The notes beneath the pieces are model-generated. The model saw only the letters and a program-made list of their open reading frames with translations, had not been told where the DNA came from and made no database searches. A program made the translations under genes and the position numbers. Positions 2,810 through 35,780 of a stretch of 36,981 nucleotides of DNA are shown here, in pieces. Position 1 is the first letter of the stretch. Every line of letters starts with the position of its first letter. The DNA is from Octopus bimaculoides (lineage: Eukaryota), in NCBI RefSeq assembly GCF_001194135.2, contig NC_068994.1, positions 5,506,140-5,543,120 on the forward strand, written 5' to 3'.

Positions 2810-2882
2810 ATGTCTGCTGGGAATGTAATCATTTTGTGGTGTGGATTATTGTTGATACTTTCAACCAAACAGATTTCTACGT
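2810..2882 (+). CDS. Exon 1: start codon and signal-peptide-like sequence MSAGNVIILWCGLLLILSTKQIST
   Basis: ATG at 2810, hydrophobic core VIILWCGLLLIL, phase-1 donor T|GTATGT at 2883. Joins exon 2 in frame (t+cc=Ser). Too short for the ORF track. Confidence 0.7.
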
Positions 2883-3136
2883 GTATGTAATTATATTTCT
2901 TTTCTTTTCTTTCTTTCTAATTACTGTCTCCATATATGTTGATTACATGTTTTAGTGGTAATTAATGCATATCCTAATTATTTGATAATGTAGTTTTGAT
3001 GTTTTATGTTTTCTCTACGGAGCCTACCTCTCTCTCTCTTTCTCTCTCTTCCCCTCTCCCTCACTCTTCTTATATATATTCACAGATGTATACGCACGTA
3101 CATATATACATATTCATATAAATTAATATATGAATG

Positions 3137-3140
<4 letters not shown>

Positions 3141-3194
<54 letters not shown>
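3141..3194. repeat. (TA)n microsatellite
   Basis: Direct inspection. Confidence 0.97.
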
Positions 3195-3196
<2 letters not shown>

Positions 3197-3420
3197 AACA
3201 CACACACACATACGCACGCACACATATACACATGCACACACACACACATACAAACGGACATATACGCACATACATATTGTAGCAGACATATATCTGAGTT
3301 GAAGCAAATATTTCAGTCTATAGTTTCAAATCGATAAATACTTTTCAAGGAAATTAGTAGACACAACATATGCTGAAATCCCTCTTGTATACCTGTATGA
3401 GTAAGTACGTGTGTTAATGC

Positions 3421-3431
<11 letters not shown>

Positions 3432-3472
<41 letters not shown>
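3432..3472. repeat. (TG)n microsatellite
   Basis: Direct inspection. Confidence 0.97.
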
Positions 3473-3475
<3 letters not shown>

Positions 3476-3655
3476 CCCTTTAACATCAGGTGGAAATTAC
3501 TGGAAACTCGTAAACCCTATCGCAATGGAACAAGACCGTGTAAATTGTGTATGGCAGGAAGATGTATCATCCTCATGAACTCACATGAGCCAAGAAGTTA
3601 CCTGAACTCCAGGACACATTTTCGGAAATTTTTACTTCAAAATTGGAAAACCTAA
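3473..3655 (+). mobile_element. Penelope-like element 3' fragment (C-terminus of the GIY-YIG endonuclease region)
   Basis: FNIRWKLLETRKPYRNGTRPCKLCMAGRCIIL...YLNSR..RKFLLQNW resembles the PLE C-terminal WKIL..A.PY....K.C.LC..EK..LN.R..KF pattern. Begins right after a (TG)n tract. Confidence 0.7.
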
Positions 3656-4391
3656 CTACCAAGCGAAGGAAGACAACTCGCCCGACCATTATTTCTTAAA
3701 AGGAATATTTTTTTTAACTATCACCGGCGTTCTTGTGTTTAAAAAATTTTTTTGCAGAGAACGGTTATCATTTAGAAAAACTGAAGAATTGTCTAGTTCA
3801 CGCTAGATATGAAACCAATGGTTTTTTTCTAAACTATTACGTTACACATACAAATATATATACATGTGCATGTGTGTGTGTGTGTTTGTGTGTATATATA
3901 CTCACGCACGCAGACACAGATAGATAGATAGATGATAGACAGAGGGAGAAAGAGAGAAGGCGAGAGAGATAGGCATATATACATATACATATGAATAAAT
4001 CCGTTTTTGTGAGTGTGTGTGTATGTGTGTGTATGTGTGTGGGCGTGTGTATTTATTTGTGAAGTTGTTTGTAAGACTGTCACCGTTTTCACCGCCTCAC
4101 AAAAATGCGTTTTCTCTGTGCTTATGTCCCCTGACCTAGCGTTGCGATAAACGAATGCCGCTACAATAAGTACATGACTTAGAAAAAGTTTTTAAAATGA
4201 CCAACAATATACTGGAGTTTGGTATACATATTTATAAACCCCGTTACAGCGGTCTACCAGTATAGCTACAATTTAGTGAAAATGTACATACATTTGTCTT
4301 TGTATATATAACATAATATAATATATATGGATATGTATACACACACTCACATATGTATATATACTAGAATGAAAAACGTGAGCGAGAAATA

Positions 4392-4545
4392 AACAGAGCA
4401 ATAACAACATGTAACGAAAACATCTTTAAATGATTATTCCGGAGCATATTCATAATCTACTTCAATTACTGCTTCGCATTTGCTTGGCAGACGGTCAGAC
4501 CGTCATTTAAAGATGTTTTTGTTAAATATTGTTATTGATTCTGTT
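4392..4545. repeat. Imperfect inverted repeat with ~42-bp arms and ~69-nt spacer
   Basis: 4392-4433 AACAGAGCAATAACAACATGTAACGAAAACATCTTTAAATGA vs the reverse complement of 4503-4545, AACAGAATCAATAACAATATTTAACAAAAACATCTTTAAATGA. Confidence 0.8.
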
Positions 4546-5911
4546 GAAGAAAATTTGTTGAAGAAAAGCCGCAATGATTATGCACCAACCCAATAAGTAT
4601 TTAATAAACCTGGAAAAATACAGAATAAGTAAGCCTAAAAGAAAAGATCTTCAAAAATTGCAACTAAGATAAAATTTGAATGGGTTGCAAATTCAATAAA
4701 ATATTCAAAGCCAAGCCATTCAATACTGATCGACCATCTTTCAGTCAAGAAGTAGGTCAAAAATAAAAGAGCTTAAAGTGCTAGAACTAAATTTAAAATT
4801 CGATAAAAATAATCTGATGCTTTATCATAAATTCGCATTCATCAAATAATATATTGTTTTAAGATTTTTGAAATAGAGAATCGTGTTTGTTTATTTATTA
4901 TTAAGACAATTTTATAAAGATGATCTTTATTTTCTTTTATTATATTTAACTCCATGAAAGTAAAGTAAAATAATTTTGCCAAAAATATAACCAAGAAAAT
5001 ATTTAATTACTGATATAGGCTTAAATTTTACTATAATCTAACATTTAGATTAATTACCTACTTCCTTTACATTTGTAAAAAAATTTTAGTGAATAAAAAA
5101 TTTTAACTACTAATGTTACAAAATATTATGGCAGTTACCACTCTATTTTCATATATTAAAATAACTGAAATTTATTTGCAGTCAGGATTAGCAATAGGGT
5201 GAAAGATGATAGATCAACATTGTATGACTTGGCTTATTTGAATATTCTATTTAATTGGGAACCCATTCAAGTTCCATTTTAGCTGCAATATTTTAAGCTC
5301 TTTTCTTTTATTTTAAGGATTAGTTTTTGTTCTGTATTTTTCCAGGCTTATTAAATACTTAAGAATATTTCAATCCCTTGCTCACGTTTTTCATTCTAGT
5401 CCACTTTTTTGTTTTACAGGAGATGCTGAAAAATCAATAATTTTTGTTCTAATACGAACAGCCATATCAACAATCCAACATACCTCTATCATCAGCTGCT
5501 CCACAGATATCACTAAGTGTTGTTTGGGAACAAACATACCTTAGATATCACCACATCCACACAATCTTAGTTCTAGGAAACATTAAACACTAACATTATT
5601 AATTAAACTACAACAAAGAAACACATTTACCCTATGTACAAAAACAGTATCGGTAAATAAATTCAATAAGTAAACCTATAACTAACTCCTAAAATATCTA
5701 ACTAAATAGTGACCTAACCTTTGAAGTCATACAAATGATATTCCCACCAGTTTTGCATAGTTATTAATATAAAAGTGCAATTCTATTCTCTCCAAAACAA
5801 AACAAACTTGATTATACGTGTGTGTCTGTCTGTATATATGCACACACACATACATATATGTGTATTTATGTATTATATAAAGGTATGTATTTTGTGTTGA
5901 TGAGAAGAAAA

Positions 5912-6185
5912 AGGTGCAGCTGTCTTGTAAGAAGTTTGCTTCCCAACCATATGATTCCAGGTTTAGTTCCACCACGTGGCACATTTAGCAAGTGTCTCCT
6001 GCTATAGCCTCGGGCCAACCAATACCTTGTGAGTCGTTGTGGTCGGAAATTGATAGAAATATTATTGCGTCTGTGTTTCTTACAGACCACCGCTTGACAA
6101 CCGGTGTTATTATGTTTCCGTCCCCGTAACTTAGCCATTTAGTAAATGAGACCAATAGGATGAGCATCAGGCTTACAAAAAAATA
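5912..6185 (+). mobile_element. tRNA-derived SINE (family 1, my label)
   Basis: CGCTTGACAACCG (6091-6103) is the exact reverse complement of 14098-14110, and GGCTTACAAA also matches. tRNA-like head. Resembles octopus SINEs as I recall them. Confidence 0.7.
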
Positions 6186-6760: not shown

Positions 6761-6847
6761 CCCAATGCAATATTACCATAGGAGATTGCGTCGCAGATGA
6801 TAAGAGAAATAACATTTCCTGCAACAGTACTTGTTTCAGAACACCTG
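6761..6847 (+). CDS. Exon 2: small Cys-rich segment (S)QCNITIGDCVADDKRNNISCNSTCFRTP
   Basis: Acceptor ttttctttattaaAG, donor G|GTAAGT, 87 nt, phase 1-1, no stop, 4 Cys. Confidence 0.75.
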
Positions 6848-8581: not shown

Positions 8582-8734
8582 AGAATTGTGTAAATTATAC
8601 TGGAGTTGACTTGTTTGGAAAAGAACAAAAATACCAATGTAACTGCAAACACCTTAGTGACTGTAAGTTCCAAATCCTTAGTAAATGTGAAAATGGATGC
8701 TTACCTGGATATGAAAAGCCATATTGTCAAAAAC
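8582..8734 (+). CDS. Exon 3: EGF-like repeat ENCVNYTGVDLFGKEQKYQCNCKHLSDCKFQILSKCENGCLPGYEKPYCQK
   Basis: Acceptor ttttttgtttacAG, donor C|GTAAGT, 153 nt, phase 1-1. FG..CxC..C..C...GC..GY....C pattern with 7 Cys. Confidence 0.9.
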
Positions 8735-11482: not shown

Positions 11483-11485
11483 ACA

Positions 11486-11554: not shown

Positions 11555-11557
<3 letters not shown>

Positions 11558-12055
11558 TTCACTTTATCTCTGTCTCCCACGCGCATGTTTAAAAATACAC
11601 ACACATAAGTGCACACTCACGCACGCATGCACTCACACACGCACGCACTCGCACATCTAGTTTACATAAATATATTTAATCAGAGTATTATTATATCTCA
11701 CAATTTCACGACATAGGTGTTTAGTTATAACGTATTAATGAGTGCATATTTGTACTTTACTTCATATTGTATTTACATTGAATTATGCATGTCCATTCTA
11801 GTAAATGTTCCAGTACTTAGATAGGTGCATCTTTATTAAATAAAAGGAAGTTTTTACAATATTATTAAACTATTAGGGAAAAATACACAGATTCTTAACC
11901 TTAATATATGTTATAATTTAAATGTAAATATAACTTTTGTTAGCTAAAATGTACCAAAACTTATCTGAATACTTGCTTGAGTTTGTCAGTATTTGCTATT
12001 ATTAATCGAGTTGTTAGTTTAATAATTTTAAATTATTTTTGTATATTATATGCAG

Positions 12056-12208
12056 GTATGTACCATAACTTCATAAAGAAAGACACAAATCAGAGTTATC
12101 ATCAACTATTTATATCTAAAAACAAAGAGGCAGTGATGTCCCCAATAGAACTAAAATTTAGAAACAAATACAGAATTAATACAATAAAAATTTGTAGCAA
12201 TCTTTCTG
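12056..12208 (+). CDS. Exon 4: first half of a degenerate F-type-lectin-like domain (R)MYHNFIKKDTNQSYHQLFISKNKEAVMSPIELKFRNKYRINTIKICSNLS
   Basis: Acceptor ttatatgcAG, donor G|GTAAGA, 153 nt, phase 1-1, open frame. KKDTNQS resembles GKQTNQSS of exon 7. Confidence 0.72.
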
Positions 12209-12624
12209 GTAAGAAACATTTCAAATTGTATTTCATATTTGTATTTCTCGTAACTGATGTTAAATTAAGATTTATTGTCGTTGTGCAAATGATTGTAGTG
12301 CTTATATTTCTAATGATACTGAAATTGAAATTAATTTGTTTTTAATATACAATTTTTATGTATTATTAATGTTATGAAAATATTTTCATTTATTCGGAAA
12401 ATACTAAGATATTGGTTCAAGTTCAGTAAGTATGCTTATTAACGTATATTAGAACATTTGTAATGATCATTCCAAATTAATAAATCTCTGAAAATATTGG
12501 CAACGTGTAATATATGCAGACTATTAAAACTTAGGTCAAACCAAACTGAAATTAATTAGTGCAAGATGTGAAATGAGTGATAAGTGATCACAAAAATCTG
12601 CGAAATAATGTGAATATTCCTTTT

Positions 12625-13924: not shown

Positions 13925-14212
13925 CTTTTACTCTTTTACTCTTTTACTTGTTTCAGTCATTTGACTGCGGCCATGCTGGAGCACCGCCTTTAGTCGAGCA
14001 AATCGACCCCAGGACTTATTCTTTGTAAGCCTAGTACTTATTCTAACGGTCTCTTTTGCTGAACTGCTAAGTTTCGGAGACATAAACACACTAGCATCGG
14101 TTGTCAAGCGATGTTGGGGGGACAAACACAAACACACAAACGCACACACATATATATACATATATGTATATATATATACGACGGACTTCTTTCAGTTTCC
14201 GTCTACCAAATC
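13925..14212 (-). mobile_element. SINE family 1, head-truncated, with (CTTTTA)n tail
   Basis: Reverse-complement homology to 5912-6185. Short tandem tail tcttttactcttttactcttttac. Confidence 0.75.
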
Positions 14213-15170
14213 TGCAAGGTAGCTATATAAACCGTGGTTTATATATATTTTATTTATTATAATAATATGAGAAAATAGATTGGTAATTGTTAAATTAATA
14301 TTTATTAATTAAAAAATTGACAAACATCCCTTACAGCTGTTTCAATTCAAGCTCTCAGAAAATTAATTAAGTAAAGTAAAAATTTATTTGAAAGTCGAAT
14401 CTCTAGATAAAGGTATACAAAGTAGGTGTTCAATTTCCTCATGTTGAGTAAATGGCTGCAAACCGTTAACTGATAAAAAAATTATACATCAAGAACATAG
14501 CATATAAATGGTAGAGCCCTTAGAAGGGAAGTAAAGCTGTGTATAATGGAATTGTAAATCAATATATTTATCTGGAGTGTTAAGTATAATAAAGCTCAAG
14601 TAGATACAATTGGTAAAAATGTCATATTGTGCTATTAAATCAATATAAACTTAGTATGTAGAGTTTAATTCAAGTGTGTATAGTTACTAGTGTATAGTGA
14701 AGGTGGAAGATACTCAGGCAATAAATTACTTATTAAAAATATCGAAATAGTTAAAAGTCCTATGAGAATATTCACTCAATTTTGGTGGTACATAAAAATT
14801 ATGTATATAATAATTTTCAAATTTTTTATCTATTTACATGAATATTAACATTCGCTGGTTCATAATTTGTGTATGCCCCTAGTTTAGTTTGTTCCTAGTT
14901 CTCTCTTCAGCTTTTCTCCTCTAAATTGAATTAATTGTACTAGATGAACCAAACCTTTAGCTATTACCTAACTTACTGTAAATAACAATTATTTAGTTCT
15001 ACTTGTTTTCGCTTTTGTATGTCCCTAAATTAAATTATTCCTAGATTTTTCTTTAGCCATTCACCTCTATATGAATACCTACTTCCGGTTTTGAAAGCTT
15101 TATATTTAACCATTTATAGTTCTTTACTGATTAAGAATTTCTATTTTCATGTATATTTTTCTCTTTTTAG

Positions 15171-15320
15171 ATTCATTAATGAACGTCACGCAACCAACTG
15201 GATTGAAATGCGAAATAAAGAACACTACTAATACTAAGACTACAATTTGCACTGGTGACGTACATACTGATACGTTGAATATCAATGGAACGGCTGGAAT
15301 TAATTTTATTAAGTTAATTG
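15171..15320 (+). CDS. Exon 5: second half of the degenerate lectin-like domain (D)SLMNVTQPTGLKCEIKNTTNTKTTICTGDVHTDTLNINGTAGINFIKLI
   Basis: Acceptor tttttctctttttAG, donor G|GTATGT, 150 nt, phase 1-1. Its two Cys are spaced similarly to those in exon 8. Confidence 0.78.
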
Positions 15321-15889
15321 GTATGTTGAAACATCACTTTAAAAGCAATTTGCAGATGTTTATTCATTTTTTTTTGGTATTTTTTATCATGTTCAATCAT
15401 TAATATCATGACTTTTGTCAAACAAGAATTTATCACAGAACTCTTCATTAAAACAATTTTTTATGGAAACAACTTTTTTAAGAAAAAATCTTTTCACAAG
15501 ACAAATTATTACTGAAAAGATACTTTTTTTCAGCTAAACGATTTGACTTTGAATTAATTCATAAAAAGTATTTTGTAATATACTTCGATTTTGTATTTGG
15601 TTTGCAAGATTCTTGATGCGAGTTCATGTGTTGAGACAAAATCTTGTTTCTTAGGTAGATTATTACACCAATAAACACACGCGCCGGTTCAATATAACTT
15701 CTTCATTGTTAGTTAATCGGGTAAATATTGGTTGATTATGATTGAAAATTAACCAATAAAACGTGATCACCACGCAAACGGCCACGACCCCTCACACTTT
15801 CATTCGCAACTTAGGTATATATTGTCAGGCACACAACAGACTCGGCTATAACATTCTGCTGTCGGATAGTGCGTGCTTAACAGATACCG

Positions 15890-16042
15890 CGGGCATCTTT
15901 CAGTTTCTGTCTACTAAATCCACATACAAGGTTTGGTTGTCCGGGTTTATAATGGAAGTTACTTGCCCAAGATACCATACTGTAGCACTGAACTTAGAAA
16001 AATCTGATTGTGGAACAAATTTTCTATCACTAGGCTACACCT
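15890..16042 (-). mobile_element. SINE family 1, degenerate 5' part
   Basis: TCTTTCAGTTTCTGTCTACTAAATC matches 14188-14212, and ACTTGCCCAAG matches the head of the 5912 copy in reverse. Confidence 0.55.
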
Positions 16043-16789: not shown

Positions 16790-16933
16790 GATGCCCACCA
16801 CAATTGTATGGTAAAAACTGTACCAAGAAATGTCATTGTTCTGGAAATAAATCATGTCACCAAATTACTGGAGAGTGTAAAGATGGCTGCGAAGATGGAT
16901 GGTATGGAGGGAAGTGTGAGAAGCAAACATATG
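16790..16933 (+). CDS. Exon 6: EGF repeat (G)CPPQLYGKNCTKKCHCSGNKSCHQITGECKDGCEDGWYGGKCEKQTY
   Basis: Acceptor caatttAG, donor G|GTGAGT, 144 nt, 8-Cys MEGF10-type pattern. Confidence 0.93.
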
Positions 16934-17452: not shown

Positions 17453-19063
17453 AAGGCGTAGCGAAGGAAGAACCGTCATATCCGATGGAACTTGGAAAAG
17501 TAAGATAAATATTATTCATGGTATAAATGACGGAGACAGAGAAGTATTTAGTTATGTCGTTTTTTATTCCAAGTCCATTTCCACCCCTCAACCGAACTAC
17601 TCTTGAATGTTCACCCTTCCAGTGAGTATCGATATTATACTTACCAGTAATATATACTAAAATCTATGCAATAAATTATTTAATTTTTGCTAATGAATGA
17701 GAGATGTATTGTTCTCGTATTTACAGAATATATTCCATTTCATATTCCTATATGTCAGTCATTCTAGTTTTCAGATTCCTTAGTATATTGTTATATAGTA
17801 ATGTTATTGTTGTTCTCATACGTCTAATTGAGTGGGATTAGTATAGGATTGTATTAAGATATTAGTGTTGTATCAAAAGGTTTCGTGAATGAGTTATTTT
17901 TACGACAGGAAATTGTATTATATAATTTTATATTCATCAATTTTCCCAAGATAATATTCTACGATATCAAATTAGAAAATTATCTAGCATGTAGTATAAA
18001 ATAAGTTAGCTCTTAAACTTCAGCTTTATGTAGATTTGAAGAAAATTATATAACTTAAATAAGTTTCGGCCAGTATAGGCCCAGGTCATATCTAACTTAA
18101 TAGCACCACCTGGAGAAGTCTTTTAGATCGTGATTAACACCCGACTCATATATGTGACATCATGGCCCACTCTAGCAAAGAGTTTTTAAAATTTATTTTT
18201 GGAGACATATCCAGGTGTAGGGGGTTGGTCTGGGACTTTTGGAAAAAATTGTCCAGAGAACTAGAATTTTATGGGATCTGTTTCCGTTTTGATGTATTTT
18301 GAAATAATATTAAAATGAGCTGAACCGGTTGAGGTAAAGTAGTTGTGTCGTAATGTTGTTATGTGTCCTGAGTTCGATTTTTGTAGTCGGCGGAGAGCAC
18401 AGAGGTCAAGTCTTGCGTGGATTTTAAAATGGATGCTAACATTATTCGTGCAATATTGATGGAATATTTTCCACATCAGATATATGATGTAGCGCTCACA
18501 GTGGCGTTGGAGAGAGAAGAGAATGAGGTTTTTAGTCGACCCCAGGAGTTGATGCTTGTCATGCCGTCTATCTTTCTTATTATTGACCTCTGGAGTGCTT
18601 CCACTTTCATAATGCTTTGCTTCGTGTGGGGTGACCACAGTGGGCAACATTATTCAAGGTGGATCGGTCAAAAGTAGAGAAGGAGAAGGATGAAAGTGTG
18701 AGCATCTCTAGACCAGACGACTCTCAGAATTCAAGAGCACATCTTGCGGGCCAAGTCAACCTTACTGTTTACATGGGAACTCCAGCTTAGATTGTTATGA
18801 ACTTTCTCGATATTCTTGCCTGATCTTTTATGAATATTTAGTTTATAAGTGTTAAGTTTTTGTCTTATAACTGCCATCTCCCATCTGGTACTTTGGGATG
18901 ATACAAACTTTGTATATTTTAAGTATATACTACATTTTTTATAGTTATGTACAGAAAAGTGGAGCTATAGAAATATGCCACTTATTCAGAAAATAACGGT
19001 TTCAAAATATATTGAACTAAAAATTGTATACTAATCATTAATTTAGGCTTCTATCTTTTTCAG

Positions 19064-19255
19064 TTAATATTGCTCAAGGTAAACAAACAAATCAATCAAG
19101 TACTTATGGAACGAAAGGAACACGTGTCTTCCATAATGGAACATGTGTGGACATGAAGGTAGGGATGACATCCGCCAAGGCGGTTGACGGTAATTTTGAC
19201 CCTGGAGTCGTACATAAATCATGTGCAAATACTAACAAGGAAAAGGATCCATTTT
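19064..19255 (+). CDS. Exon 7 (3' end lost in gap): N-half of the F-type lectin domain (V)NIAQGKQTNQSSTYGTKGTRVFHNGTCVDMKVGMTSAKAVDGNFDPGVVHKSCANTNKEKDPF
   Basis: Acceptor ctatctttttcAG. NIA.GK.T.QSSTY, A.AVDGN and SC..T...P motifs typical of FTP domains. Runs into Ns at 19256. Confidence 0.88.
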
Positions 19256-19504
19256 NNNNNNNNNNNNNNNNNNNNNNNNNNNNNNNNNNNNNNNNNNNNN
19301 NNNNNNNNNNNNNNNNNNNNNNNNNNNNNNNNNNNNNNNNNNNNNNNNNNNNNNNNNNNNNNNNNNNNNNNNNNNNNNNNNNNNNNNNNNNNNNNNNNNN
19401 NNNNNNNNNNNNNNNNNNNNNNNNNNNNNNNNNNNNNNNNNNNNNNNNNNNNNNNNNNNNNNNNNNNNNNNNNNNNNNNNNNNNNNNNNNNNNNNNNNNN
19501 NNNN
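19256..19504. other. Assembly gap interrupting exon 7
   Basis: Ns begin mid-reading-frame. Confidence 1.
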
Positions 19505-20290
19505 TCGGTGTTGCTACTTTTAACAATTCCAGCGGCAAGTTAGAAGCCCTGTCGGTTCAAATTACGTTTGTTCATTTGAGTTCAAATAGTGTGTAAAATT
19601 ATTATACAGTTAATTAAAAGAACATTATAATAGTTGGTGAAATTTGAACTGTTTTCTCACCACCACTGATTCCTTGAGAATGGAAATAATTTTTGTTTAC
19701 ATTTTATTTTGAACTTCAGAAGAGACAAAGCCTATGATCGGAAGAAACTTGTATTGACTTCATAATATTGTGGATATGAACTCAGGAGATGATATCCATC
19801 TAACCAAAATTCCATTTTATCTTTAACACTTGTAATTGCTAGTGCATTACTAGACTTTAGATCGTTGTGGATTTGAATGAATGTCGTGTCTGTTTTTATG
19901 ACTGAATTGTTATTAAATGATGAATTGTTTTCTTCTTATTAAAATCACATCGTTTTTAATACAGTGTTATAGCAGAAACAGTTGACTTTAATGCATTGAT
20001 ATATAAAAACATATATGCTGACTGGTGGCAAAAGCGTAAAAAGGGAGACAATCTGAAAAAAGGAGAATCTCCCCTGTATTTGAAAACTATAGAAATACTT
20101 TCTTTTAAATCATTTAATTTAATTTTCCCACAATTTGTTTTTCATGCTTTACTCTAAGTTGAAAAAGTCACAAAAGACTGATACCAGAACTAAGACATTC
20201 TTCATGATAAAATTATTTTAGCATTCTCTACCTTGTCTTATTTTCCTTATACATATCAGCTCGTGCATTCCTTTTCAACCATCTACATGA

Positions 20291-20599: not shown

Positions 20600-23407
20600 A
20601 GGTATTGACCGTCAGAACAGCCACTACCACTCCCCCCGACCAACGAAGCCATCCTGTCTTTCGTTAGACGAATAACATAAAAGTATTTTATAAGGACCAA
20701 AATGTCCAAACTTCTCAAAAATGCAGCACGTACCAGATGTCGAAAATAATAGTAGTGATGACGATAGTAACGAACGATAATATAGTATTTTACAGCAGAT
20801 AATAGAGTAAGTGGGAGGAAGTGGAGTAGAGAAGAAAACAGTTTAGTGATGCAGTGCTACTTAGAAAGTGAACCTAAAAGAAGGGTCTACAAAAATGAGT
20901 GTTAACACTTTAGGTAGAGAAGGCTAAGTTTAAAGTAACTTATCAAGCTAATACTATTAGGCGAAAAAAGTGGATGACAGAATTGGAGGCGGAAGAGATC
21001 ACAAGAGAACTGGAAATGAAAGACCAGGCAGTGGGAAAGACAAACAACATAAGAGATAGAGCTCAAGCCAAAAAAGAATCTAAAAGAATAAATAATAATA
21101 GCGCTACCAATAAGGAAGGGACAACTGGCACCAACGACATAAGTGATTTGAGTGAAGAAGATTTTAGATGAGTTGCAGGAAGTAATGAGTAAAGAAGTAA
21201 GAAGAAGATTGCCAGCATTAAAAGGCACCAACAGAAGGAAGCTACAAGAAATGACTTGGAAAGTATATTCTGTTATCAGTAGGATAGATACTAAAAATAT
21301 AGAAGACACTAACTTATTGATCTACGCAGGAGGGGTAGCAGTCACCAGAAGATTAGATATCTCATAGAGAAATATTAAAAAAGAGCAAATGTGGGAAAGG
21401 AGACTACAAAATAAAGTGAAGACTTTAAGACAAGATCTGAGTAGAATAGAAGCCTGGAAACTGAACGAGTTAGGAAACACAAGATGCAAATCTTCCCTCG
21501 AGAAAAGGTACTTAGTCAAAGAGAAAGGATCTGGGACAGTAATAGAACAGCGTATCATAGCAGCAGCAAGTAGTCTCTCCAGATATCAGAAAAGAACAGA
21601 ATAGATTATTTGAGACAGAGCAGAGGAGATTTTATAAACAAATAAATAGTGGAGAACAAAGTACTAAAGATGAGAAACCTAATTTAGAAGAAGCTAGTAC
21701 ATTCTGGAGAAATATATGAGTTAAACCAGTCAATCGTAATGGAGATGCAATATGGTTAAAGAAAGTGAGGGAAAAAGTACGGAGTGAGAAGCAGCCAGAT
21801 TTTAGATTAACTAGTGAAGTAATGAGTAAAGTGTTAAGAAAAATGCCGAATTGGAAGGGCCCAGAGCCAGATTTAGTTCAAGGATACTGGCTAAAGAAAT
21901 TCAGTAGTTTACATGGTAGGCTGAAGGAACAACTTCAGGATTGCCTTAATAGAGGAATGATACCAGATTGGATGACTAAAGTGAAGACAGTACTCATTAT
22001 GAAGAATAAGAGCAAGGGTAATACGGTTAGCAACTATAGACTAATCACTTGCTTACCGTTAGTGTGGAAGCTGTTAACAGGAATGCTTTCAGAAAGCATT
22101 TACGAGCACCTTGACAACCAAAATTTACTGCAAGAACATAAAGATTACATAATGAAGGCTAGAGGAACATATGATCTATTATATATAGACAAAGTTGTTC
22201 TAAATGAAGTAAAAGCTGGAAAGAAAAATCTAACAATTGTATGGATAGATTATAGGAAAGCCTATGACATGATCCCACACTCATGGATAAGTGAATGTTT
22301 GAGTATATTCAGTTTAGCAGATACCATAAGAGAATTAATTAACTTTAGCATGAAGAAACGGAAAGTAGATTTTTACTCAGGTGACACACTCTTAAGGAAT
22401 GTTAATATCAAAAGAAGAATTTTCTAGGCAGACTCGTTGCCCCTTTTAATATTTGTCGTATGTTTGATGCCCCTCAGTTTAGTATTAAGGAAGGCAAAGG
22501 CTGCGTATCAGTTCCGAAATAACAAGGGAAAAATTATTCATTTGCTCTACATGGATGATCTGAAGTTTTTTAGTAATAATGATAAAGAGATAGATTCCCC
22601 AATACAAACTGTAAGACCCTTCAGCAAAGCTATAGGTATGGAATTTGGCATGGATGAATGTTCAGTATAAGTCATGAGAATTGGACAGGTAGTCAACAGA
22701 GAAGGCATCTAATTACTAGATGGCCAGATACTAAAATCATTGAAAGGAAGAGGGAGTTATAAGTATTTAGAAGTATTGGAATGTGACAGAGTACTAACTG
22801 CAGAAATGAAAACGAAAATTGAAAAGGAGTACATAAGAAGCATGAGGAATCTAATGAAGTCAAAGCTAAATGGTCCGAATCTACTGGAGGCTGTAAATAC
22901 TTGGGCAGTATCATTACATACTCAGCAGCTTTTGTAGATTGGACAAAAGTTGAATTAGCAAAGCTAGACAGAAGATATAGGAAGGAATTCAATATGAATA
23001 GAGGACTCCATCCAAGTGCAGGAATAGCGAGATTATACCTACATAGAGAGAAAGTTGAAATAGGGTTAATTTCAGCAGAAGACTGCGTAGAGTTAGCTAG
23101 AGTAAATACAGACAACGTAAGAGAATTAATTAACTTTGGTATGAAGAAATGGAAAGTAGATTTCTACTCATGTGACACACTCTTAGGGAAAGTTAAAATC
23201 AAAAGAGGAATTTTCCAGAGTGACTCGTTGTCCCCTTTAATATTTGTCTTATGTTTGATTCCCCTCACTTTAGTATTAAGGAAGGCAACAGCAGGGTATC
23301 ATTTCCGAAATAGTAAGGGGAAAAATTATTCATTTGCTCTACATGGCTGATCTGAAGCTTTTTAATAAGAATGAATAAGAGATAGATTCCTTAGTACAGA
23401 CTGTAAA
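20600..23407 (+). mobile_element. Decayed R4/Dong-clade (RLE-type) non-LTR retrotransposon, 3'-truncated, with internal duplication of part of the RT
   Basis: Broken ORF: N-terminal RKWSREENSLVMQCYLESEPKRR (Myb-like), MPNWKGPEPDLVQGYWLKK, NYRLITCL, WIDYRKAYDMIPHSWI, YMDD at 22548-22559. Several stops and frameshifts. No endonuclease region seen. Boundaries approximate. Confidence 0.85.
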
Positions 23408-24181: not shown

Positions 24182-24370
24182 GTGACAGGCTGAAAGGATT
24201 TAAAGTTTATGTTGGATCATCAATTTGTTTTGAAAATGGGAGTTCTGAATACAAAAAAGATGTAATTCATATTAAATGTGCAGAACCACTCAATTCAAGT
24301 TATGTCAAAATATCGTTATTAGATGGACAGAATAAGAGAATGCTTACTCTATGTGAAGTGGAAGTATTAC
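24182..24370 (+). CDS. Exon 8: C-half of the F-type lectin domain xDRLKGFKVYVGSSICFENGSSEYKKDVIHIKCAEPLNSSYVKISLLDGQNKRMLTLCEVEVL
   Basis: Acceptor ttttggttctAG, donor C|GTAAGT, 189 nt, phase 1-1. Contains RL.GF.V.V and the LTLCEVEV FTP signature. Confidence 0.92.
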
Positions 24371-25271: not shown

Positions 25272-25415
25272 AATGTGTTCGTGGATTCTATGGAAATATG
25301 TGTATGGAACGTTGTAAACGCTGTGTAGAGTCTAAATGTGATCAAGTTACGGGACGCTGTGAAAAAGGTTGCAAAATCGGATATTACTGGTCCAATAGTT
25401 TCAATAATTGCACAG
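25272..25415 (+). CDS. Exon 9: EGF repeat (Q)CVRGFYGNMCMERCKRCVESKCDQVTGRCEKGCKIGYYWSNSFNNCT
   Basis: Acceptor ttgttattgcAG, donor G|GTTAGA, 144 nt, 8 Cys. Confidence 0.9.
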
Positions 25416-27269
25416 GTTAGATAAACTTTTAATCTCCTACTCAATGATAACACCGAGAGATTCCATTGCAAACCTTTCTTATATCAGGTTCTACAAATAT
25501 CCATATCCACAACAACTTCACAATTTTACCATTACCAACCTTATATGCTTTGGTGTGAGCATTATTTGAAATTCTAAACATTATTTGAAAATTTTAACCG
25601 TATATTTCTCTTGCAGAGAAAAAAAATCTGCAGAACTTAATGTCTCATTAACTACATTACTTTCTACTGTTATCGCTGAGATTAATTCTGTTTTGTTTTT
25701 GTTTTTTTGTTTTTTATGCAGTAATATATTAAAAAGTAAAGATCGCTTTCTCTAATTACTCTGTCTTCTCTTCTTTTGTTTCTTTTGTTTTCCTCTTTTA
25801 ACATTTGAGTCGCTTTTTTGTTTACCAGTCTTTCTGTTCATTTCACAAATATACAATCCTTCAATGTGTACATGATGACCTTGTCCCTTTTACAAACACA
25901 ATACCCGAATCAATACACAAATCAAGGATATAATGATGAAACCTTAGAAATGTACGCCTCGAATGCTTCCCATAATTTAGAAATCATCCCCAGAGAGAGC
26001 AAATGCATGAGTCATGATCAGTGTTGTCTATAATACACCACTAAGTTCCACACCAGTTTCCTGCTCACATCCATGGGACAACGCTGTTGTCATGAATATT
26101 CTCGAGGAAAAGAAGTCTATTCAACTGACGGGCAATAATTTACTCACAAACACACTCCAATCAATGTCTTACATACGCGTTGTTTCTTCTACATTTTTCT
26201 TTTTTATTATTGTTAAATATATCTTTTGCCGGTCCTCTGTAGTTTTTTTAAATAATACTTCTAGAACTATACCCATTCACCTTATCCTAACCATCTCTCA
26301 ATCCTCTTGAACCCTCACTAAATTCTCTTCTTCCCGTTCTTCCCTCTCAGAACTACAACTATCTGATGACTATCAGGGTCACCATTCTATAAATGTTCAA
26401 ACCGAACATCAATCAACTCAAATAATTTCACCTTTATGGGGAGGCTTAAATATTAATGGATGCCGTCCCACTTATTTATGTATATCTTAAAGTAAAATTG
26501 AGACATTATCCATTATATTGATCATCAGTCATCGTATTAGCATTTTCGTAGCTTCATTTATCATAGATTTGATGAGAGAAGAGAATGAGGATCACAGTAC
26601 ATATGGGTTGCTACAAAGCAACACTTTATTGGGGTTAGAATAAAGTAATCCAGCTGAAAATCAATGGTTGCAGGTAGGTGTCTCGAAATTATAATGTTAT
26701 TGAAGGAGAGACGATGATGCAGGACGTTGTGCCAGCAGCTACAAGGGCTCCCGCAAACGTTATTTATGTTGTTCCATCTCGTTGTAGTCCCCCATAGAGA
26801 ACATTTTCTTTCTGTAACTGCTGGATAGCAGTGGCATTAAGCAAAGGATGGTATAATCGGACGCAGCACTAAAACTTTTCTGTTATCTTTAGAATAGGAA
26901 TTTAACGCCAGTCCTTGTAACCAGGCAAACCTACCCAATAAGATCTTGCTAAATAGGGAGTCTGATTATAGCAAATCCAAAAATATATAAAGTGCTATAA
27001 TATTGTCAATAGAACTGGTGTTATCTTATACATTATCAAACTGAACCTCAATCAACTCATCTGTTTGGGGGAGTAAGGTGAAGGAAATAAACGTGAATTA
27101 AAGAGGAGGAGGCAGCCATCAGGGACCGTAGGCATACAATGTGAAGAATAGGACATAAATGACACCACATCACTTGAATGATTAGTACCACAGTTGCATG
27201 ATAGACAGAAAGATGACCGTTAGATGAATTGTGTGGTAAGGCATGACAGGATCTAGCTTTTGCTTAAAT

Positions 27270-27975
27270 GGACGGTGGTTCTCAAGCACTTCACAGCATC
27301 ATTAATCCCGTTCGTTTTCCATCTTCTACGTGAGGTTCAACATTTTGAAGTCGGTCTTCACTACGTTATCCCACATCTTTCTGGGTCTTCTTCCAAAAGT
27401 TTTATCCAACTATAGCGGTTGCCACGTTCTTATCCAGCTGTTTTATCCATCCGTGCCCCATGACCTTACTAACTCAGTCTTTTCTCTTGCGCATTATTGA
27501 TTCTTATGCCCATTTTTTTTCTCTCAAAACATTTTTCTTTTGCCGTACATGCAAACTAGCTTTGCACATCCAGCAGAGCATGCGAACTTCCTTTCACTCT
27601 ACTTTTTATGTGTTTGTATATTAATCCAAGTTTCAAAGATATGTAGCATTGATAAATAGAAAAAATCTGAGAACGGAGACTTGGCGAACACCTACCTCTA
27701 AACTAAATTCATCGGTGTATTCTTTAACTCACACCTTGCTGACAACATCCCTGTATGTGTCTTGAATGACTCTCAACAGCCGTTTGTTTACAAGCGGCCG
27801 TTACGACTCCGACATCAAGGAATGGAAACTCTGTCAAAAGCTTTCTTTAGAGTGACAATTACCAAGTAGATGGTTTTACTTTTTACTAAATACTTCTTCT
27901 GCAGTAGCTGTATTATAGAGAGAAGATCAATAATACTTCTTGCCCGAACGAAACCAAACTACATTTCGTCTATGC
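27270..27975 (-). mobile_element. RTE-clade LINE remnant (RT to C-terminus)
   Basis: Minus strand reads IDEM*FGFVRARSIIDLLSIIQLLQKKYLVKSKTIYLVIVTLKKAFDR (QFGF...KAFD RT motifs) and GRRPRKMWDNVVKTDFKMLNLT (RTE C-terminal GRPRKTW motif). Many stops. Confidence 0.75.
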
Positions 27976-28089
27976 TCTCTTTCTCCTAATTAATCGAGTC
28001 GTGACTCTTTCAGTAACGTTGATGACCTAGTCCAGTAATTTAAACCCTCTATTGTTACTTCTCACTAAGACATCTCATTTACCCACGTA

Positions 28090-28345
28090 AGAAAGCTAGC
28101 AGAATCATTAGGACGCCCGGCAAAGTCCTTAGCGAAATTTCTTCCGTCTTTACATTCCGAGTTCAAATTTGCGCCGAAGTCGACTTTGTCATTTCCTCGT
28201 TTGTAATAGTACTTAGCGGTTTTTCTGCCGATTACACGTCCAGAGTTCAAATGCCGCCGGGGCTGACTTTTCCTTTCATTATTTCGAGGACGAATAAATA
28301 ACTACCAGTTGAACACTGGGGTCGATGTAATCGACTTACCCACTT
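28090..28345 (+). mobile_element. tRNA-derived SINE (family 2) with duplicated head
   Basis: A-box-like TAGCAGAATCA at 28097, two B-box-like GAGTTCAAAT at 28159 and 28243, tail GGGGTCGATGTAATCGACT. Confidence 0.7.
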
Positions 28346-29808: not shown

Positions 29809-29809
29809 T

Positions 29810-29840
<31 letters not shown>

Positions 29841-29963
29841 NNNNNNNNNNNNNNNNNNNNNNNNNNNNNNNNNNNNNNNNNNNNNNNNNNNNNNNNNNNN
29901 NNNNNNNNNNNNNNNNNNNNNNNNNNNNNNNNNNNNNNNNNNNNNNNNNNNNNNNNNNNNNNN
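29841..29963. other. Assembly gap within a (TA)n tract
   Basis: Ns flanked by TA repeats. Confidence 1.
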
Positions 29964-30524: not shown

Positions 30525-30643
30525 ATAATATAGTATAGATGACATAATAGCAATTCACATGTGATGTGCCAATTTCTTAACCCTATATATGGAACATGTC
30601 CAGGCGTGTGATGCAGGATACACCGGATATAAATGCCAAGAAG
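30525..30643 (+). pseudogene. Decayed copy (A') of the type-A EGF exon
   Basis: Its 3' end TGTGATGCAGGATACACCGGATATAAATGCCAAGAAG|GTTATT matches exon 35276-35404. A 2-nt deletion (GGCG-TGT vs GGTGATTGT) shifts the frame. The 5' part is eroded, so the start is approximate. Confidence 0.7.
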
Positions 30644-30909: not shown

Positions 30910-31044
30910 AATGTGAAGTTGGTAGATTTGGTAAAAATTGTACTAAGACATGTCATTGTTTCGAGAACAAACCCTGTAACAGAAAATTTGGAAACTGTTC
31001 AGATGGATGTTCTGCTGGATATAAAGGCAACAATTGTCAAAAAG
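30910..31044 (+). CDS. EGF exon B1: ECEVGRFGKNCTKTCHCFENKPCNRKFGNCSDGCSAGYKGNNCQK
   Basis: Acceptor atattttcAG, donor G|GTATAA, 135 nt, 8 Cys. Confidence 0.9.
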
Positions 31045-31303
31045 GTATAATTTAAATCTATATAACATTTTAGATAAATATGTTTAAATTAATGCAGCTG
31101 ACTCTTACTTTATATTTCCTTTTGTCAATAAGACTGCTTCAATGTTAACTCATATCTGAGTTATTTTTTTAAAGATGAGACAATAAAAAGCGTGTCATTG
31201 ACATCTCATTTATATCTCTGATATCGGAAACTATTACGGCCATTAATTATATTGTGTGTAGCTAATTGTATCTAACCTATTGTTTTTGTATTAATATTTT
31301 CAG

Positions 31304-31438
31304 AATGTGAAGTTGGTAGATTTGGTAGCAATTGTGCTAATATATGTCATTGTATTGACAACAAAAACTGCAGCAGGCAATTTGGAAATTGCTCAGATGG
31401 ATGTTCTGCTGGATATAAAGGCGACTACTGTCAAAAAG
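31304..31438 (+). CDS. EGF exon B2: ECEVGRFGSNCANICHCIDNKNCSRQFGNCSDGCSAGYKGDYCQK
   Basis: Tandem duplicate of B1 at 394-nt offset, same splice sites, 135 nt, 8 Cys. Absent from the ORF track. Confidence 0.9.
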
Positions 31439-31540
31439 GTATAATTTAAATCTATATAACATTCTAGATAAATATGTTTAAATCAATGCAGCTGATTTCC
31501 TTGTATCAATAACGCGATAATGGAGATTTGCAAGCCAGTA

Positions 31541-31870: not shown

Positions 31871-31908
<38 letters not shown>

Positions 31909-31926
31909 TCATGAGTTTATATATAT

Positions 31927-31981
<55 letters not shown>

Positions 31982-32254
31982 TGATAAAAGCTTAGAAAAC
32001 AATTTGTGGGTATGTATAAATATCTCGTTTATTTCCCACGTATATCCTGTTGCAGTCAGAAAAGCCATTCGGTTGATTTAAAGATGAGCTAATCCGGGGC
32101 TATCTATTTTATTAATAATTTCCGTTGGCTTGTTGCACCGAATTCAACACAAGCGTTTGTGATTTCTTTAGTGGTGAGACGATTTAACGTCTATTTCTCA
32201 GCATATAGGTTAGAAAATGTTTTATTTCTATATTGGTTCTATATCTATACACGT

Positions 32255-32530
32255 ATATGTATGTGTGTATGTATATGTGTATGCATGCATGTAATTATAC
32301 ATATATGCATGTTTGTATGTATATGTGTATGTAAGCATGTATGTATATATGGATTGATACATGTATGTATGTATGTATGTATGCCTGTATGTTTGTATCT
32401 GTCTATCCATACATCCACATATATACGTATGTGTGTATGTATGTATGTTTGTATTATGCATGTATGTATGTATGTTTGTATGTATGTATGTATGTATGTA
32501 TGTATGTATGTATGTGCTGGTGTGTGTGTG
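32255..32530. repeat. Degenerate (ATGT)n/(TG)n tract
   Basis: Direct inspection. Confidence 0.9.
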
Positions 32531-33279
32531 CGCCTGTATGCATATATCAGGCACTCAATACATACACGCACAAACACCTAGCTTCTAAACAGACACATTC
32601 ACACAGAACTTAATTACAGGTGTGTAATCTTACATATATGCCCATATAAACTCAACCATATATTTACAAACCCCAGAAACTGTCTAAACGCAGACATTTT
32701 GTCACTTTCGAGCGACTGGCTTGTTATCCCTGAAGAAGAATTTAAACAAATCTCAAAGAAAGACATATTCTTATAGACTTTAATTTTGTGTCTGGATATC
32801 CCTAACATTATTTCTTGGTTGTCAATTTTAATTGATTTAATGTGAAAATATCCTGATACTCTATATTAAATATAACAGTTTCATTTGTTTTATTTCTTGT
32901 GACAAACCATATGTAGAAGGATTACTTAAATATAAATAGATATCGTTAACTCATTTATATTTATGGTGAAATATCAATAATATTCGTTAGATGTATAATA
33001 TTCGGTTGGTGGTTCAAATAACATTTATTTTTCCATTTTTAAATACAGGTGATTATCGAAATTGTGAATTATTAAAAGTCATTTAAAATGATTTCCTTAC
33101 TATGATGGAGGATTATGATGTCATAAACTGATAGAATATTTGAATTATAGTCATTATATTTATGACCATACAGACTGTAGTTGTGTGTAGGTTTTTACAT
33201 TTACTTTTTACATTTATTAATGGAGCTATTTTCATTGAATGGCTTGACCAAAATTCCCATGTAACTATTTTTATATTAG

Positions 33280-33412
33280 TCTGTTCTAGTCATACATTTG
33301 GTCACGAATATAAAAAGTCGTGTCATTGTTCCGAAAAATGTAACCACATCGAAGGATCGTGATGTGATGCAGGATTGTGACGCAGTATTCACCGGACTGA
33401 AATGCCAAGAAG
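33280..33412 (+). pseudogene. Pseudo-exon (A'') of the type-A EGF exon: CSSHTFGHEYKKSCHCSEKCNHIEGS* ... DCDAVFTGLKCQE
   Basis: AG and GTTATT splice sites retained, but length is 133 nt (frameshift), with an in-frame TGA and the second Cys changed to Tyr. Confidence 0.78.
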
Positions 33413-34678
33413 GTTATTTTCCGTAAAAGGTCCAATAACATGAAGAGAGTACTATGGCTAAGGCATTCAGGATACGGAAGAAGGTTTACTCCTGCACATG
33501 TGTCACACAAGCCTACCGCAGTGTGATACATGAACGATTTCCAATGTTTAAGAATTAGATAAGCACTCTGACTTCAAGGATAAAACTGAGAAATTAAGAG
33601 ATAACAGAGTAAACTGTAAATAAATTGTTGTGTGTGTAGAGAATTGCTGCTGTATCTTGAATAAGTAACATCAGGAATCTTCAGACATTGATTTAGAGGT
33701 CCAAGTTGATGGTTGCTGGCGGCTGCAGGATGGGAAGACTGAGAGAGAGAGAGTGGGCAGGGAGAATTAGAGAGAGAAAGTAAGTCAGCCATAGAAAAGT
33801 TAACAATCTATTCCAGATATAAGTATCATATTCTTTTCTATATCAAATAATGCATGCAGCAAATAGATGTCGTTTATAAAAGTTGAAGAGTATCTATAAT
33901 TACGTAAAGCCTTTGAATTTCTTTTGTCGAACCGCTGTTATGAAAACGTACACGCAATAAAACCAGATGTTAAACGCATTTATCCCCTATTCTTCATATT
34001 GCGTCCTTATTACAGTCCCTCATGATTGCTTCATCTCCTTCTTTTGACTTCACTTCACCTCCTCCAAACTGATATTCATGTAACCCTACCTCTAAACATC
34101 CGTCAAACTCTTTTTAGTTTCTAGCACAGTTACTTAAATCCCATTAATCCACCATGTTTTGGTTCATTTATCCTTATTCTCGTTCAGAACTTTACTGTAC
34201 ATTAAAATATGCCCTCACCATTTCTCTCTCTCCCTCTTTCTCTCTCCCTTTCTCTCTCACCCCTCTCTCTCTCCCTCTCTTTCCATCTGGAGAATCTTCA
34301 TGAAGATACTTGTTCCTCTCTCTCTATCATACATTCATATCCCTCAGTGATGTACCCCACACAGTCTTACGAGAACTTCGTGACATCACTAGTGCTGGTG
34401 CCACAACAAAAGCACCCAGTAAACACAGTAAAGCGGTTGGCGTTAAGCCTCTTGTTTTCGTTTTATGCAGAGGTTGTCTACGTCACTGTTTACGTGGAAA
34501 TTATGGCTGCTTGTTAGTATTTTTCGAGTTTTTACATCAATGGTTCGCATCTTATCAGGTGTCCAACCAAGCAGATCAAATGTTGGTATGAGTACTGGCA
34601 CTGCAAACACATTGCGGGCCACTGTTTTATTGAATGGAGAGAGTGCTGAAGTTCTTTTTTTTTTTTTTTTGCTGTATC

Positions 34679-34724
34679 TATGTATGTATGTATGTATGTA
34701 TGTATGTATGTATGTATGTATGTA
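34679..34724. repeat. (ATGT)n microsatellite
   Basis: Direct inspection. Confidence 0.95.
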
Positions 34725-34879
34725 GACATAATTCTTTCACAAGCCGTAGGAGAAAACAAATAAAACTGGTTACACAATTTACACGACGGAATGATGTATA
34801 AGAAACCGCGATCACGAAATTCTCTCTAGAAAGGACGGCGCTTCGTTGCAGGACTAAATGCGAGCAATATTGAGTGAAG

Positions 34880-34945
34880 GGGAAAAACAATTACATCGAC
34901 CCCCCCCACCAGTACTTGACTGATACCTTATTTCATTGGTCCCAG
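34880..34945 (-). mobile_element. SINE family 2 tail fragment
   Basis: ATTACATCGACCCC...CAGTACTTGACTG matches the family 2 tail in reverse. Confidence 0.5.
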
Positions 34946-35275
34946 GTATTTAATAATGTTACTTATGAATATGTTTGATTGATGGAAGGGGTATGATGCT
35001 TTTTAGTCCATTTTCTAAATACAGGCTCTTGTTATGATTTGCGGACTTGAAGCCGCTACTAGTTAAAGTTATTCTCTTACTATGAAGGTGCTTTTCACGT
35101 ATTATCAATTGTCCTGATAATGAATTCGTAAAATGCTAGAATTACAGCCTTAATATGTATAGAAAAACAATTTCTGAGTGTGGCTAAGTGTTTACATTTA
35201 TTCATCGATGTATCATGACCAGAATTTTGTGATGCAGAATACTCCGGATTCATTTCCAACAATACTTTATTTCAG

Positions 35276-35404
35276 AATGTTCCAATGGTACCTTTGGTCA
35301 CAATTGTAATGGTTCTTGTCATTGTTCCCTACCATGTTTCCACGTAAATGGATCGTGTCAAGGTGATTGTGATGCAGGATACACCGGATACAACTGCCAA
35401 AAAG
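35276..35404 (+). CDS. EGF exon A (intact): ECSNGTFGHNCNGSCHCSLPCFHVNGSCQGDCDAGYTGYNCQK
   Basis: Acceptor ctttatttcAG, donor G|GTTATT, 129 nt, 8 Cys, phase 1-1. Confidence 0.88.
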
Positions 35405-35645
35405 GTTATTTTCTATACGTTATTCCAAAATTATTAAATTACTTTTTATATTTGATTTAATTGTTCTACTTGTTCAATCTTGTTTATGATAACATATTAC
35501 GTTAAGGGAAACAAATGTTTAATGTTTATTTACAAACATACAATATCTTAATTATATTTCTGAAGTAGAAAAGTATTATAGACATAACGTTCATTATATT
35601 CAACACAGGATATCTAATATTATTTGTTTATACTAATATTTTCAG

Positions 35646-35780
35646 AATGTGAAGGAGATAGATTTGGTGTAAACTGTAACAGTGTATGTCACTGTGTCGA
35701 CAACAAAAACTGCAGCAGACGAAATGGAATATGTCTAGATGGATGTGCTGCTGGATATGAAGGCGACAATTGTCAACAAG
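35646..35780 (+). CDS. EGF exon B3: ECEGDRFGVNCNSVCHCVDNKNCSRRNGICLDGCAAGYEGDNCQQ
   Basis: Acceptor atattttcAG, donor G|GTATAA, 135 nt, 8 Cys. Confidence 0.9.

Follow-up and report, generated by a model that had tools for sequence, protein, structure and literature searches.

An octopus gene with F-type-lectin and EGF-like modules as the probable 5′ part of a mollusc receptor phosphatase of the MEGF/galactose-binding-domain family

We analysed a window of 36,981 nucleotides (nt) from Octopus bimaculoides (RefSeq assembly GCF_001194135.2, contig NC_068994.1, positions 5,506,140 to 5,543,120, forward strand), in which 13 exons, all on the plus strand between positions 2810 and 35780, form the promoter-proximal 33 kb of a gene encoding a signal peptide and a heavily cysteine-bonded ectodomain. 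The gene is real, and it is an ordinary member of a family that is already annotated and described. Judged from the proteins that share its ectodomain, it is probably the 5′ part of a cephalopod member of the mollusc receptor protein tyrosine phosphatases (PTPs) that combine MEGF-type EGF repeats with a galactose-binding domain (GBD). This assignment would correct the family label, since the genes named 'draper', 'MEGF10' or 'RPTP mu/T/kappa' would be mollusc-wide lectin/EGF receptor phosphatases, a family that in snails sits in a locus associated with schistosome resistance.

Exon structure and family assignment

Exons were resolved from open stretches bounded by AG acceptors and GT donors, with homologous proteins as tblastn guides, and such sites delimit all of them. 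The first exon (E1, 2810-2882) carries the ATG and a hydrophobic, signal-peptide-like leader, MSAGNVIILWCGLLLILSTKQIST, and ends in phase 1 at the donor GTATGT. It is 71% identical to the start of the O. sinensis protein XP_029644740.2; the 12 residues of its hydrophobic core, VIILWCGLLLIL, have a mean Kyte-Doolittle value of 3.2. The leader is kept in orthologs and paralogs, in agreement with the signal peptide proposed in the initial annotation of this DNA. Splicing E1 straight to E3 was rejected, as it makes a TAG codon, and it was this stop that led to E2 (6761-6847, 87 nt), a cysteine-rich N-terminal piece, SQCNITIGDCVADDKRNNISCNSTCFRTP, located by tblastn with the relatives P0001 and P0002 and by its splice sites. 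A degenerate first EGF-like module with seven cysteines follows in E3 (8582-8734, 153 nt). The two halves of a beta domain of about 100 residues are encoded by E4 (12056-12208, 153 nt; found by tblastn with P0002) and E5 (15171-15320, 150 nt; …LKCEIKN…ICTGDV…INFIKLIG), and the second EGF-like module by E6 (16790-16933, 144 nt; CPPQLYGKNC…). An F-type-lectin domain is divided between E7, of which the 5′ part is readable (19064-19255; VNIAQGKQTNQSS…AVDGNFDPGVVHKSCANTNKEKDPF), and E8 (24182-24370, 189 nt; DRLKGFKVYVG…MLTLCEVEVL). The third EGF-like module, E9 (25272-25415, 144 nt; CVRGFYGNMC…), has a weak donor, GTTAGA. Four EGF cassettes complete the series, namely three of a 45-residue 'A' type, E10 (30910-31044), E11 (31304-31438) and E13 (35646-35780), each of 135 nt, and one intact 43-residue 'B' type, E12 (35276-35404, 129 nt).

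E1 ends after the first base of a codon, and each later exon opens with two split-codon bases and closes with one, so that the complete internal exons are symmetric (phase 1-1) and multiples of three (87, 153, 153, 150, 144, 189, 144, 135, 135, 129 and 135 nt). Thirteen consecutive phase-1 junctions are far beyond chance, and the initial description of a modular gene made of symmetric exons was thereby borne out. Phase 1 is the usual state for exons of extracellular modules, and the symmetry alone proves nothing. The spliced product has 605 readable residues with no stop, 68 cysteines and 24 N-glycosylation sequons (N-x-S/T), and the ectodomain is probably heavily N-glycosylated. Its domain order is signal peptide, cysteine-rich piece, EGF, beta domain, EGF, F-type lectin, EGF and the four EGF cassettes; the order given initially was right except for the omission of the cysteine-rich E2, which stands between leader and first EGF.

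An O. sinensis locus (L001, on CM016872.1) runs collinear with the window, and 82-92% of the nucleotides are identical, also in the introns and the 5′ flank. The collinear ortholog is XP_029644740.2, 'protein draper' (CM016872.1:64.77-64.86 Mb), which has the same exon order, phases and domain order, and differs in its sequence (protein identity about 65%, range 56-66%), in the His that it keeps at the fucose-contact position of the lectin, and in being annotated without a transmembrane (TM) segment. This locus also bridges the first assembly gap (19256-19504, 249 N), in which ~69 nt at the end of E7, the E7 donor and ~141 nt of intron are hidden. E7 enters the gap with an open frame; positions 19064-19255 match L001 53744-53935 without gaps, and position 19505 picks up again at L001 54146, so that order, orientation and spacing are kept on both flanks, with 210 nt expected from the alignment against the 249 N. 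The O. sinensis counterpart of E7 measures 261 nt (L001 53744-54004), and E8 starts in the phase that a 261-nt E7 requires, the frame within the gap being unread.

The 5′ end has been annotated differently in O. vulgaris, where CAI9733301 and CAI9733300 start with …LIRDLSDLVTLLDIEVVRNVC. This sequence corresponds to positions 2730-2830 read in a different frame, and it overlaps the start codon of the signal peptide; their first exon is probably a mis-framed annotation, and on this alignment the match reflects a 5′ untranslated region that is conserved at the DNA level.

The closest proteins, all from octopus, bear the names 'protein draper', 'MEGF10', 'fucolectin…domain-containing' and 'receptor-type tyrosine-protein phosphatase T/mu/kappa-like'. 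In O. vulgaris CAI9733300, O. bimaculoides XP_052834032 and P0041 the same N-terminal modules are joined to a TM segment and PTP domains. The PTP-bearing relatives match PF00102 at E=1e-76 to 1e-87, and the full-length ones carry a second, degenerate PTP-like domain (…HCRKNFHKSG…). A search with Pfam found no EMI domain at E<=1 in the window product or in P0001. Given relatives with a TM segment and tandem PTPs, and the missing EMI domain, the gene would be a mollusc MEGF/GBD receptor PTP and not a Draper/MEGF10 protein. The 'PTP-like' alternative flagged in the initial annotation is therefore favoured over the engulfment reading (MEGF10/Draper/CED-1) that it had put forward.

The 3′ end of the window points the same way. 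The donor of E13 (CAAG|GTATAA) is intact and in phase 1, so that another exon is expected downstream. The block E12-intron-E13 (764 nt) has 90% nucleotide identity to the O. bimaculoides gene for XP_014777921.2 ('receptor-type tyrosine-protein phosphatase mu'), with 79% amino-acid identity for E12 and 100% between E13 and the EGF that lies just before the TM and PTP domains in XP_014777921. The TM exon of that gene lies 2.2 kb 3′ of the E12-E13-like block and is followed by the D1 and D2 PTP exons; by this spacing, the TM exon of our gene would lie about 1 kb beyond the window. XP_014777921.2 differs in that it is without most of the ectodomain exons and lies in a gap-rich assembly. Its locus (L002) was considered as the same locus as the window and rejected, because outside the 764-nt block the two are only 72-77% similar, which makes it a paralog.

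Relatives are widespread, with 64 at E<=1e-60 in gastropods, bivalves, a chiton and a brachiopod, many of them combining PF22633 with PF00102. Tandem clustering of paralogs was seen in the relatives only: O. vulgaris has CAI9733294-312 on a single chromosome, and a stretch of ~400 kb in O. sinensis contains at least four genes of the family. The initial caution about novelty was justified, since annotations of this architecture are common among molluscs and a description exists for Biomphalaria sudanica, whose MEGF/GBD-containing RPTPs comprise 17 mostly clustered genes, three of them in the schistosome-resistance locus SudRes1, with EGF-domain loss between haplotypes (PMC12297450). Common to the octopus gene and these RPTPs are the signal peptide, a lectin domain of galactose-binding type and several EGF repeats of MEGF type; its octopus relatives share the single TM segment and the tandem PTP domains, and clustered paralogs with variable ectodomains are common to both. 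The gastropod relatives have only ~25-30% sequence identity to the octopus gene, the octopus genes have an extra N-terminal module found only in cephalopod-type proteins, and the octopus gene is not known to be linked to parasite resistance or to another phenotype.

The names taken from vertebrate-type R2B receptor PTPs (mu, kappa, T) fit less well. These proteins have a MAM-Ig-FN3 ectodomain, whereas a Pfam search of the window product and its relatives detected none of these three. A vertebrate-type R2B phosphatase was rejected on this ground, and the names reflect similarity of the PTP domains only.

Ectodomain modules and their divergence

The F-type-lectin fold predicted for E7-E8 is genuine. 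Joined by X residues over the gap, the window's own halves match striped bass FBP32 (3CQO) at E=1.8e-11, eel agglutinin (1K12) at E=9e-4 and Sm-hPAF (3LE0) at E=2e-3 in a phmmer search against solved F-type lectins. The Pfam check proposed initially gave a divided answer: the spliced product and each lectin half had no match, because the gap splits the domain, but orthologs pass PF22633 and PF00754 at this position. The blocks AVDGN…SC.HT…, …R.G and …LCEVEV align with eel agglutinin (AAA) and FBP32, with the difference that the octopus domain is embedded in a receptor and is not a soluble lectin. A literature search for F-type-lectin architectures with EGF domains returned nothing.

Binding of fucose by this domain is doubtful. 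His52, Arg79 and Arg86 of AAA form the fucose-binding triad, within the motif H-x26-R-x-D-x4-R/K. In the alignment to 1K12 the position of the fucose-contact His52 is Asn in the window (SCANT, against SCTHS/SCTHT), and for this reason the fucose or glycan sensing suggested initially is called into question. The equivalent residue is His in O. sinensis and O. vulgaris, and Gln or Ser in other paralogs. The Arg79 equivalent falls inside the gap (19256-19504), and the Arg86 equivalent is kept, since E8 opens with 'DRLKG', whose Arg is aligned to ER(I/L) in AAA and FBP32; the positions of Asp81 and Cys82-Cys83 are not conserved in the octopus family. The comparison with oyster bindin, also made initially, does not hold, because oyster bindin has a variable tandem array of F-type lectins and the window gene a single lectin domain (E7 and E8), with only the EGF cassettes repeated.

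The beta domain of E4-E5 was searched and modelled with its O. sinensis and paralog copies. It has no Pfam match, and a profile search among 1.84 billion representative proteins returned 11 relatives. The best nine of the 11 (E<=5e-5) have the same cephalopod-type architecture, seen directly for P0039-P0042; the other two are P0043 (E=1e-4), a short repetitive peptide unlike a family member, and P0044 (E=2.6e-4). On these sequences, the module formed by the cysteine-rich piece, EGF, beta domain and EGF is cephalopod-specific, and it is the least-explored element of the gene. AlphaFold2 modelled the O. sinensis copy as all-beta, with moderate confidence (pLDDT 68, pTM 0.62). Foldseek returned nothing for it at E<=1e-3, and the weak top matches (TM score 0.4-0.5) are mostly of the jelly-roll, discoidin, neuropilin-b1, CBM32 and furin-P kind, which gives a weak lead towards a jelly-roll, galactose-binding-like or 'lectin-like' fold. 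Of the 'lectin-like' domain proposed initially, the all-beta unit of about 100 residues stands in the model, and the lectin likeness is without a Pfam or confident fold match.

Seven intact EGF-like exons are present in the window. The cassettes have eight cysteines and match the Tie2 EGF repeats at E=4.5e-5, which makes the EGF repeats recognised initially repeats of the MEGF/Tie2 type; in Pfam they gave only a sub-threshold match to EGF_STAB1-2 (E=0.012). The stalk, of the laminin/Tie2 type, is made of the B and A units, and E10 and E11 are tandem duplicates that include ~50-60 nt of intron on each side (87.6% identity over 241 nt). Two further B cassettes on the plus strand have decayed. 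The pseudo-exon psiB1 (30586-30643), aligned to an intact O. sinensis B exon, is a 3′ remnant that has lost the acceptor and the 5′ half and has a 2-nt deletion. The second, psiB2 (33280-33412), is 133 nt long, not a multiple of three, and has lost one cysteine, with a net insertion of 4 nt and two stops in frame. A search for a decayed A cassette 3′ of it found none. The order in the window is thus psiB-A-A-psiB-B-A, against B-A-A-B-A with intact B exons in O. sinensis, so that cassette content differs between close species.

In-frame skipping of EGF cassettes is plausible for this gene, by analogy with the O. sinensis paralog LOC115219456. This is a different gene with a longer stalk, located on the same chromosome as the O. 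sinensis ortholog, in which an F-type lectin and an EGF stalk are combined with a TM segment and tandem PTPs. The eight RefSeq isoforms X1-X8 (XP_036365017-25) are identical save for deletions of 43, 43, 88, 131 and 176 residues, exactly one to four whole EGF cassettes, and two small differences of one and three residues. These isoforms are RefSeq predictions, and none of them removes the lectin domain. Skipping of any cassette, as claimed initially, is accordingly backed by predicted isoforms of a paralog for the EGF stalk and does not extend to the lectin modules.

Read-through past the donors of E10, E11 and E13 (31045-31056, 31439-31450 and 35781-35792) reaches a stop after three codons (GII*/GIT*). 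Since a stop stands three codons past these A cassettes, soluble forms are possible, and intronic polyadenylation could give soluble ectodomain forms.

The ectodomain evolves fast on a kept cysteine scaffold. Over E1-E9, amino-acid identity to O. sinensis is 65%, yet 34 of the 36 cysteines are conserved, and the ratio of nonsynonymous to synonymous substitution rates (dN/dS) is 0.76 (bootstrap 95% interval 0.56-1.07; 410 aligned codons). When substitutions were placed at random at half the observed divergence, the frame stayed open in 0.07% of trials, which argues that the gene is maintained. Divergence from O. sinensis is a mosaic, introns included, with identities of ~85-90% around E1-E3 and E6-E7 and of 66-71% around E4-E5; the low-identity blocks span 11680-12563 and 15099-15727, and the neighbouring regions are at 84-92%. 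This pattern suggests gene conversion or exchange among paralogs, or non-orthology of the E4-E5 segment, and dN/dS for E4-E5 is for this reason to be read with caution.

The locus thus displays several modes of ectodomain diversification: phase-1 cassettes duplicated together with their intron flanks, some of which decay, cassette skipping in the predicted isoforms of a paralog, and near-neutral amino-acid change on a fixed cysteine scaffold.

Alternative readings and a proposed mode of action

Several observations weigh against the assignment to the receptor PTPs. Neither a TM nor a PTP exon was found in the window, nor in its last part after E13 (35781-36981), and the cytoplasmic part is taken from relatives. 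The window product, as said, had no Pfam match of its own, and the dN/dS interval extends past 1. In O. sinensis, the annotation of the collinear ortholog gives a 691-residue product that ends by intron read-through after an A cassette, without a TM segment, and the overlapping 374-kb O. sinensis model that contains a PTP uses no exon of the orthologous locus and looks chimeric. The relatives P0031 and P0039 have a TM segment with only a short tail, and the isoforms and gene models cited here are computational predictions.

The 374-kb model, a 1575-residue 'MEGF6' (P0045), was tried as proof of a PTP in the ortholog and rejected on account of its span and of its having no exons in the locus. 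It spans the whole 'draper' gene on CM016872.1, and its PTP domain switches paralog type in mid-domain. It is probably a chimeric model fusing tandem paralogs, and was therefore not used as evidence.

Such short products raise the alternative that the gene encodes only an EGF/lectin protein without phosphatase, either secreted or membrane-anchored with a short tail, and serving as a soluble or adhesive recognition factor, with transcripts that stop after an EGF cassette or run on only into a TM exon and a short tail. The annotated O. sinensis ortholog, closing by intron read-through and lacking a TM segment, is of this kind, read-through after E10, E11 or E13 would give a clean soluble product, and P0031, P0039 and oyster 'MEGF10' proteins have a TM segment and a short tail with YQEL and NPYQN motifs. 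We nevertheless hold it unlikely that this is the only form, as the donor of E13 is intact in phase 1 and the E12-E13 block is 90% identical to the block that precedes TM and PTP exons elsewhere in O. bimaculoides; the short models may be truncated annotations, and soluble and PTP forms could coexist. The tyrosine motifs in the short tails of the oyster relatives would also suit an engulfment receptor of the Draper/CED-1/MEGF10 type, signalling via NPxY or ITAM-like tyrosines. Draper, CED-1, MEGF10 and SCARF are, like the predicted octopus protein, type I membrane proteins with arrays of eight-cysteine MEGF-type EGF repeats, and RefSeq has given the names 'protein draper' and 'MEGF10' to relatives of the gene. 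These names were, however, transferred on EGF similarity alone, and the Draper-type proteins have an N-terminal EMI domain and a non-catalytic NPxY/YxxL tail. Here EMI is missing from the window product and the orthologs, the N-terminus is the different, cephalopod-specific module, there is an inserted domain of lectin fold, and PTP domains are present in the nearest full-length relatives, which leaves an engulfment receptor of this type very improbable.

A third possibility is that the gene is a decaying paralog in a birth-and-death family, a pseudogene or on the way to becoming one. The dN/dS of 0.76 with an interval that includes 1, the replaced fucose-contact His, the two cassette exons already dead and an E7 that is not fully readable would all agree with it. 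Against this, all 13 exons have open frames and canonical splice sites, the probability of finding no stop under unconstrained change is 0.0007, 34 of 36 cysteines are conserved, and true decay at this locus can be seen, for comparison, in the dead cassettes. We regard a decaying gene as improbable.

For a receptor PTP of the MEGF/GBD family the following mode of action may be proposed. E13 would be spliced in phase 1 to a TM exon that lies some 1-2 kb or more past the end of the window, and two PTP domains would follow as in the relatives, the one next to the membrane active and the other degenerate. The membrane-distal modules would bind a ligand, probably not fucose through the canonical triad, while the EGF stalk would set reach and spacing, its length changing as cassettes are skipped in frame, gained or lost. 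Clustering by the ligand would then modulate phosphatase activity. The tandem family evolves through duplication of exons and of whole genes, through the decay of cassettes and through rapid change of amino acids, a pattern that fits a possible recognition role (immune, other non-self or surface recognition). More ambitious, and rather doubtful, is the proposal that the cephalopod-specific N-terminal module, and its E4-E5 domain in particular, is a new ligand-binding domain, and that a fast-evolving tandem cluster, with cassette birth and death and combinatorial EGF splicing, provides octopus with a diversified repertoire of recognition receptors signalling via a phosphatase. Given the ligand and the expressing tissue, the family could be an entry point to cephalopod innate recognition.

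Assembly gaps and other elements of the window

The window is AT-rich, with many microsatellites and three runs of N. Besides the gap in E7, there is a second one (29841-29963) within a TA microsatellite of intron 9. It is not expected to hide an exon, as the collinear locus comparison showed none between the O. sinensis exons that correspond to those flanking it; exon order is kept around it and spacing is similar (~5.1 kb in the window, 5.75 kb in O. sinensis), and the 3 kb around it have no collinear match in the O. sinensis locus. The third gap, of 725 N at 719-1443, is upstream of the gene and has CA/TA-rich microsatellite flanks.

Intron 7, which splits the F-type-lectin domain, contains a degenerate reverse-transcriptase retroelement on the plus strand (20900-23400) that is not in the gene product. 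It matches RVT_1 at 21729-22427 (E=3e-9) and at 22437-22670 (E=9.5e-5). The reverse-transcriptase segment RELINF..KVDFYS..LL..V.IKR.IF occurs twice, at ~22.3 kb and ~23.1 kb (repeat at 22901-23350), which makes this an internally duplicated or a nested element. Scans of the other long open reading frames on both strands, with Rfam, tRNA and Pfam searches, gave nothing beyond this retroelement. An open reading frame of 129 residues on the minus strand of intron 6 (18261-18650) has no Pfam match and by eye resembles the C-terminal tail of a non-LTR retrotransposon ORF2.

An interspersed repeat of ~280 nt is present at 5919-6182, 13929-14212 and 15884-15999, in several copies and both orientations. 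It is not tRNA-derived according to ARAGORN and has no Rfam match, and it occurs also at the O. sinensis locus (at least six places in L001) and at the O. bimaculoides paralog locus (at least five places in L002).

Finally, a 1.2-kb segment of intron 9 (27103-28329), in which we saw no coding signal, matches L001 89312-90546 at 82% and out of order, the counterpart lying 3′ of the last annotated O. sinensis exon; the segment is probably mobile, transposed or rearranged.

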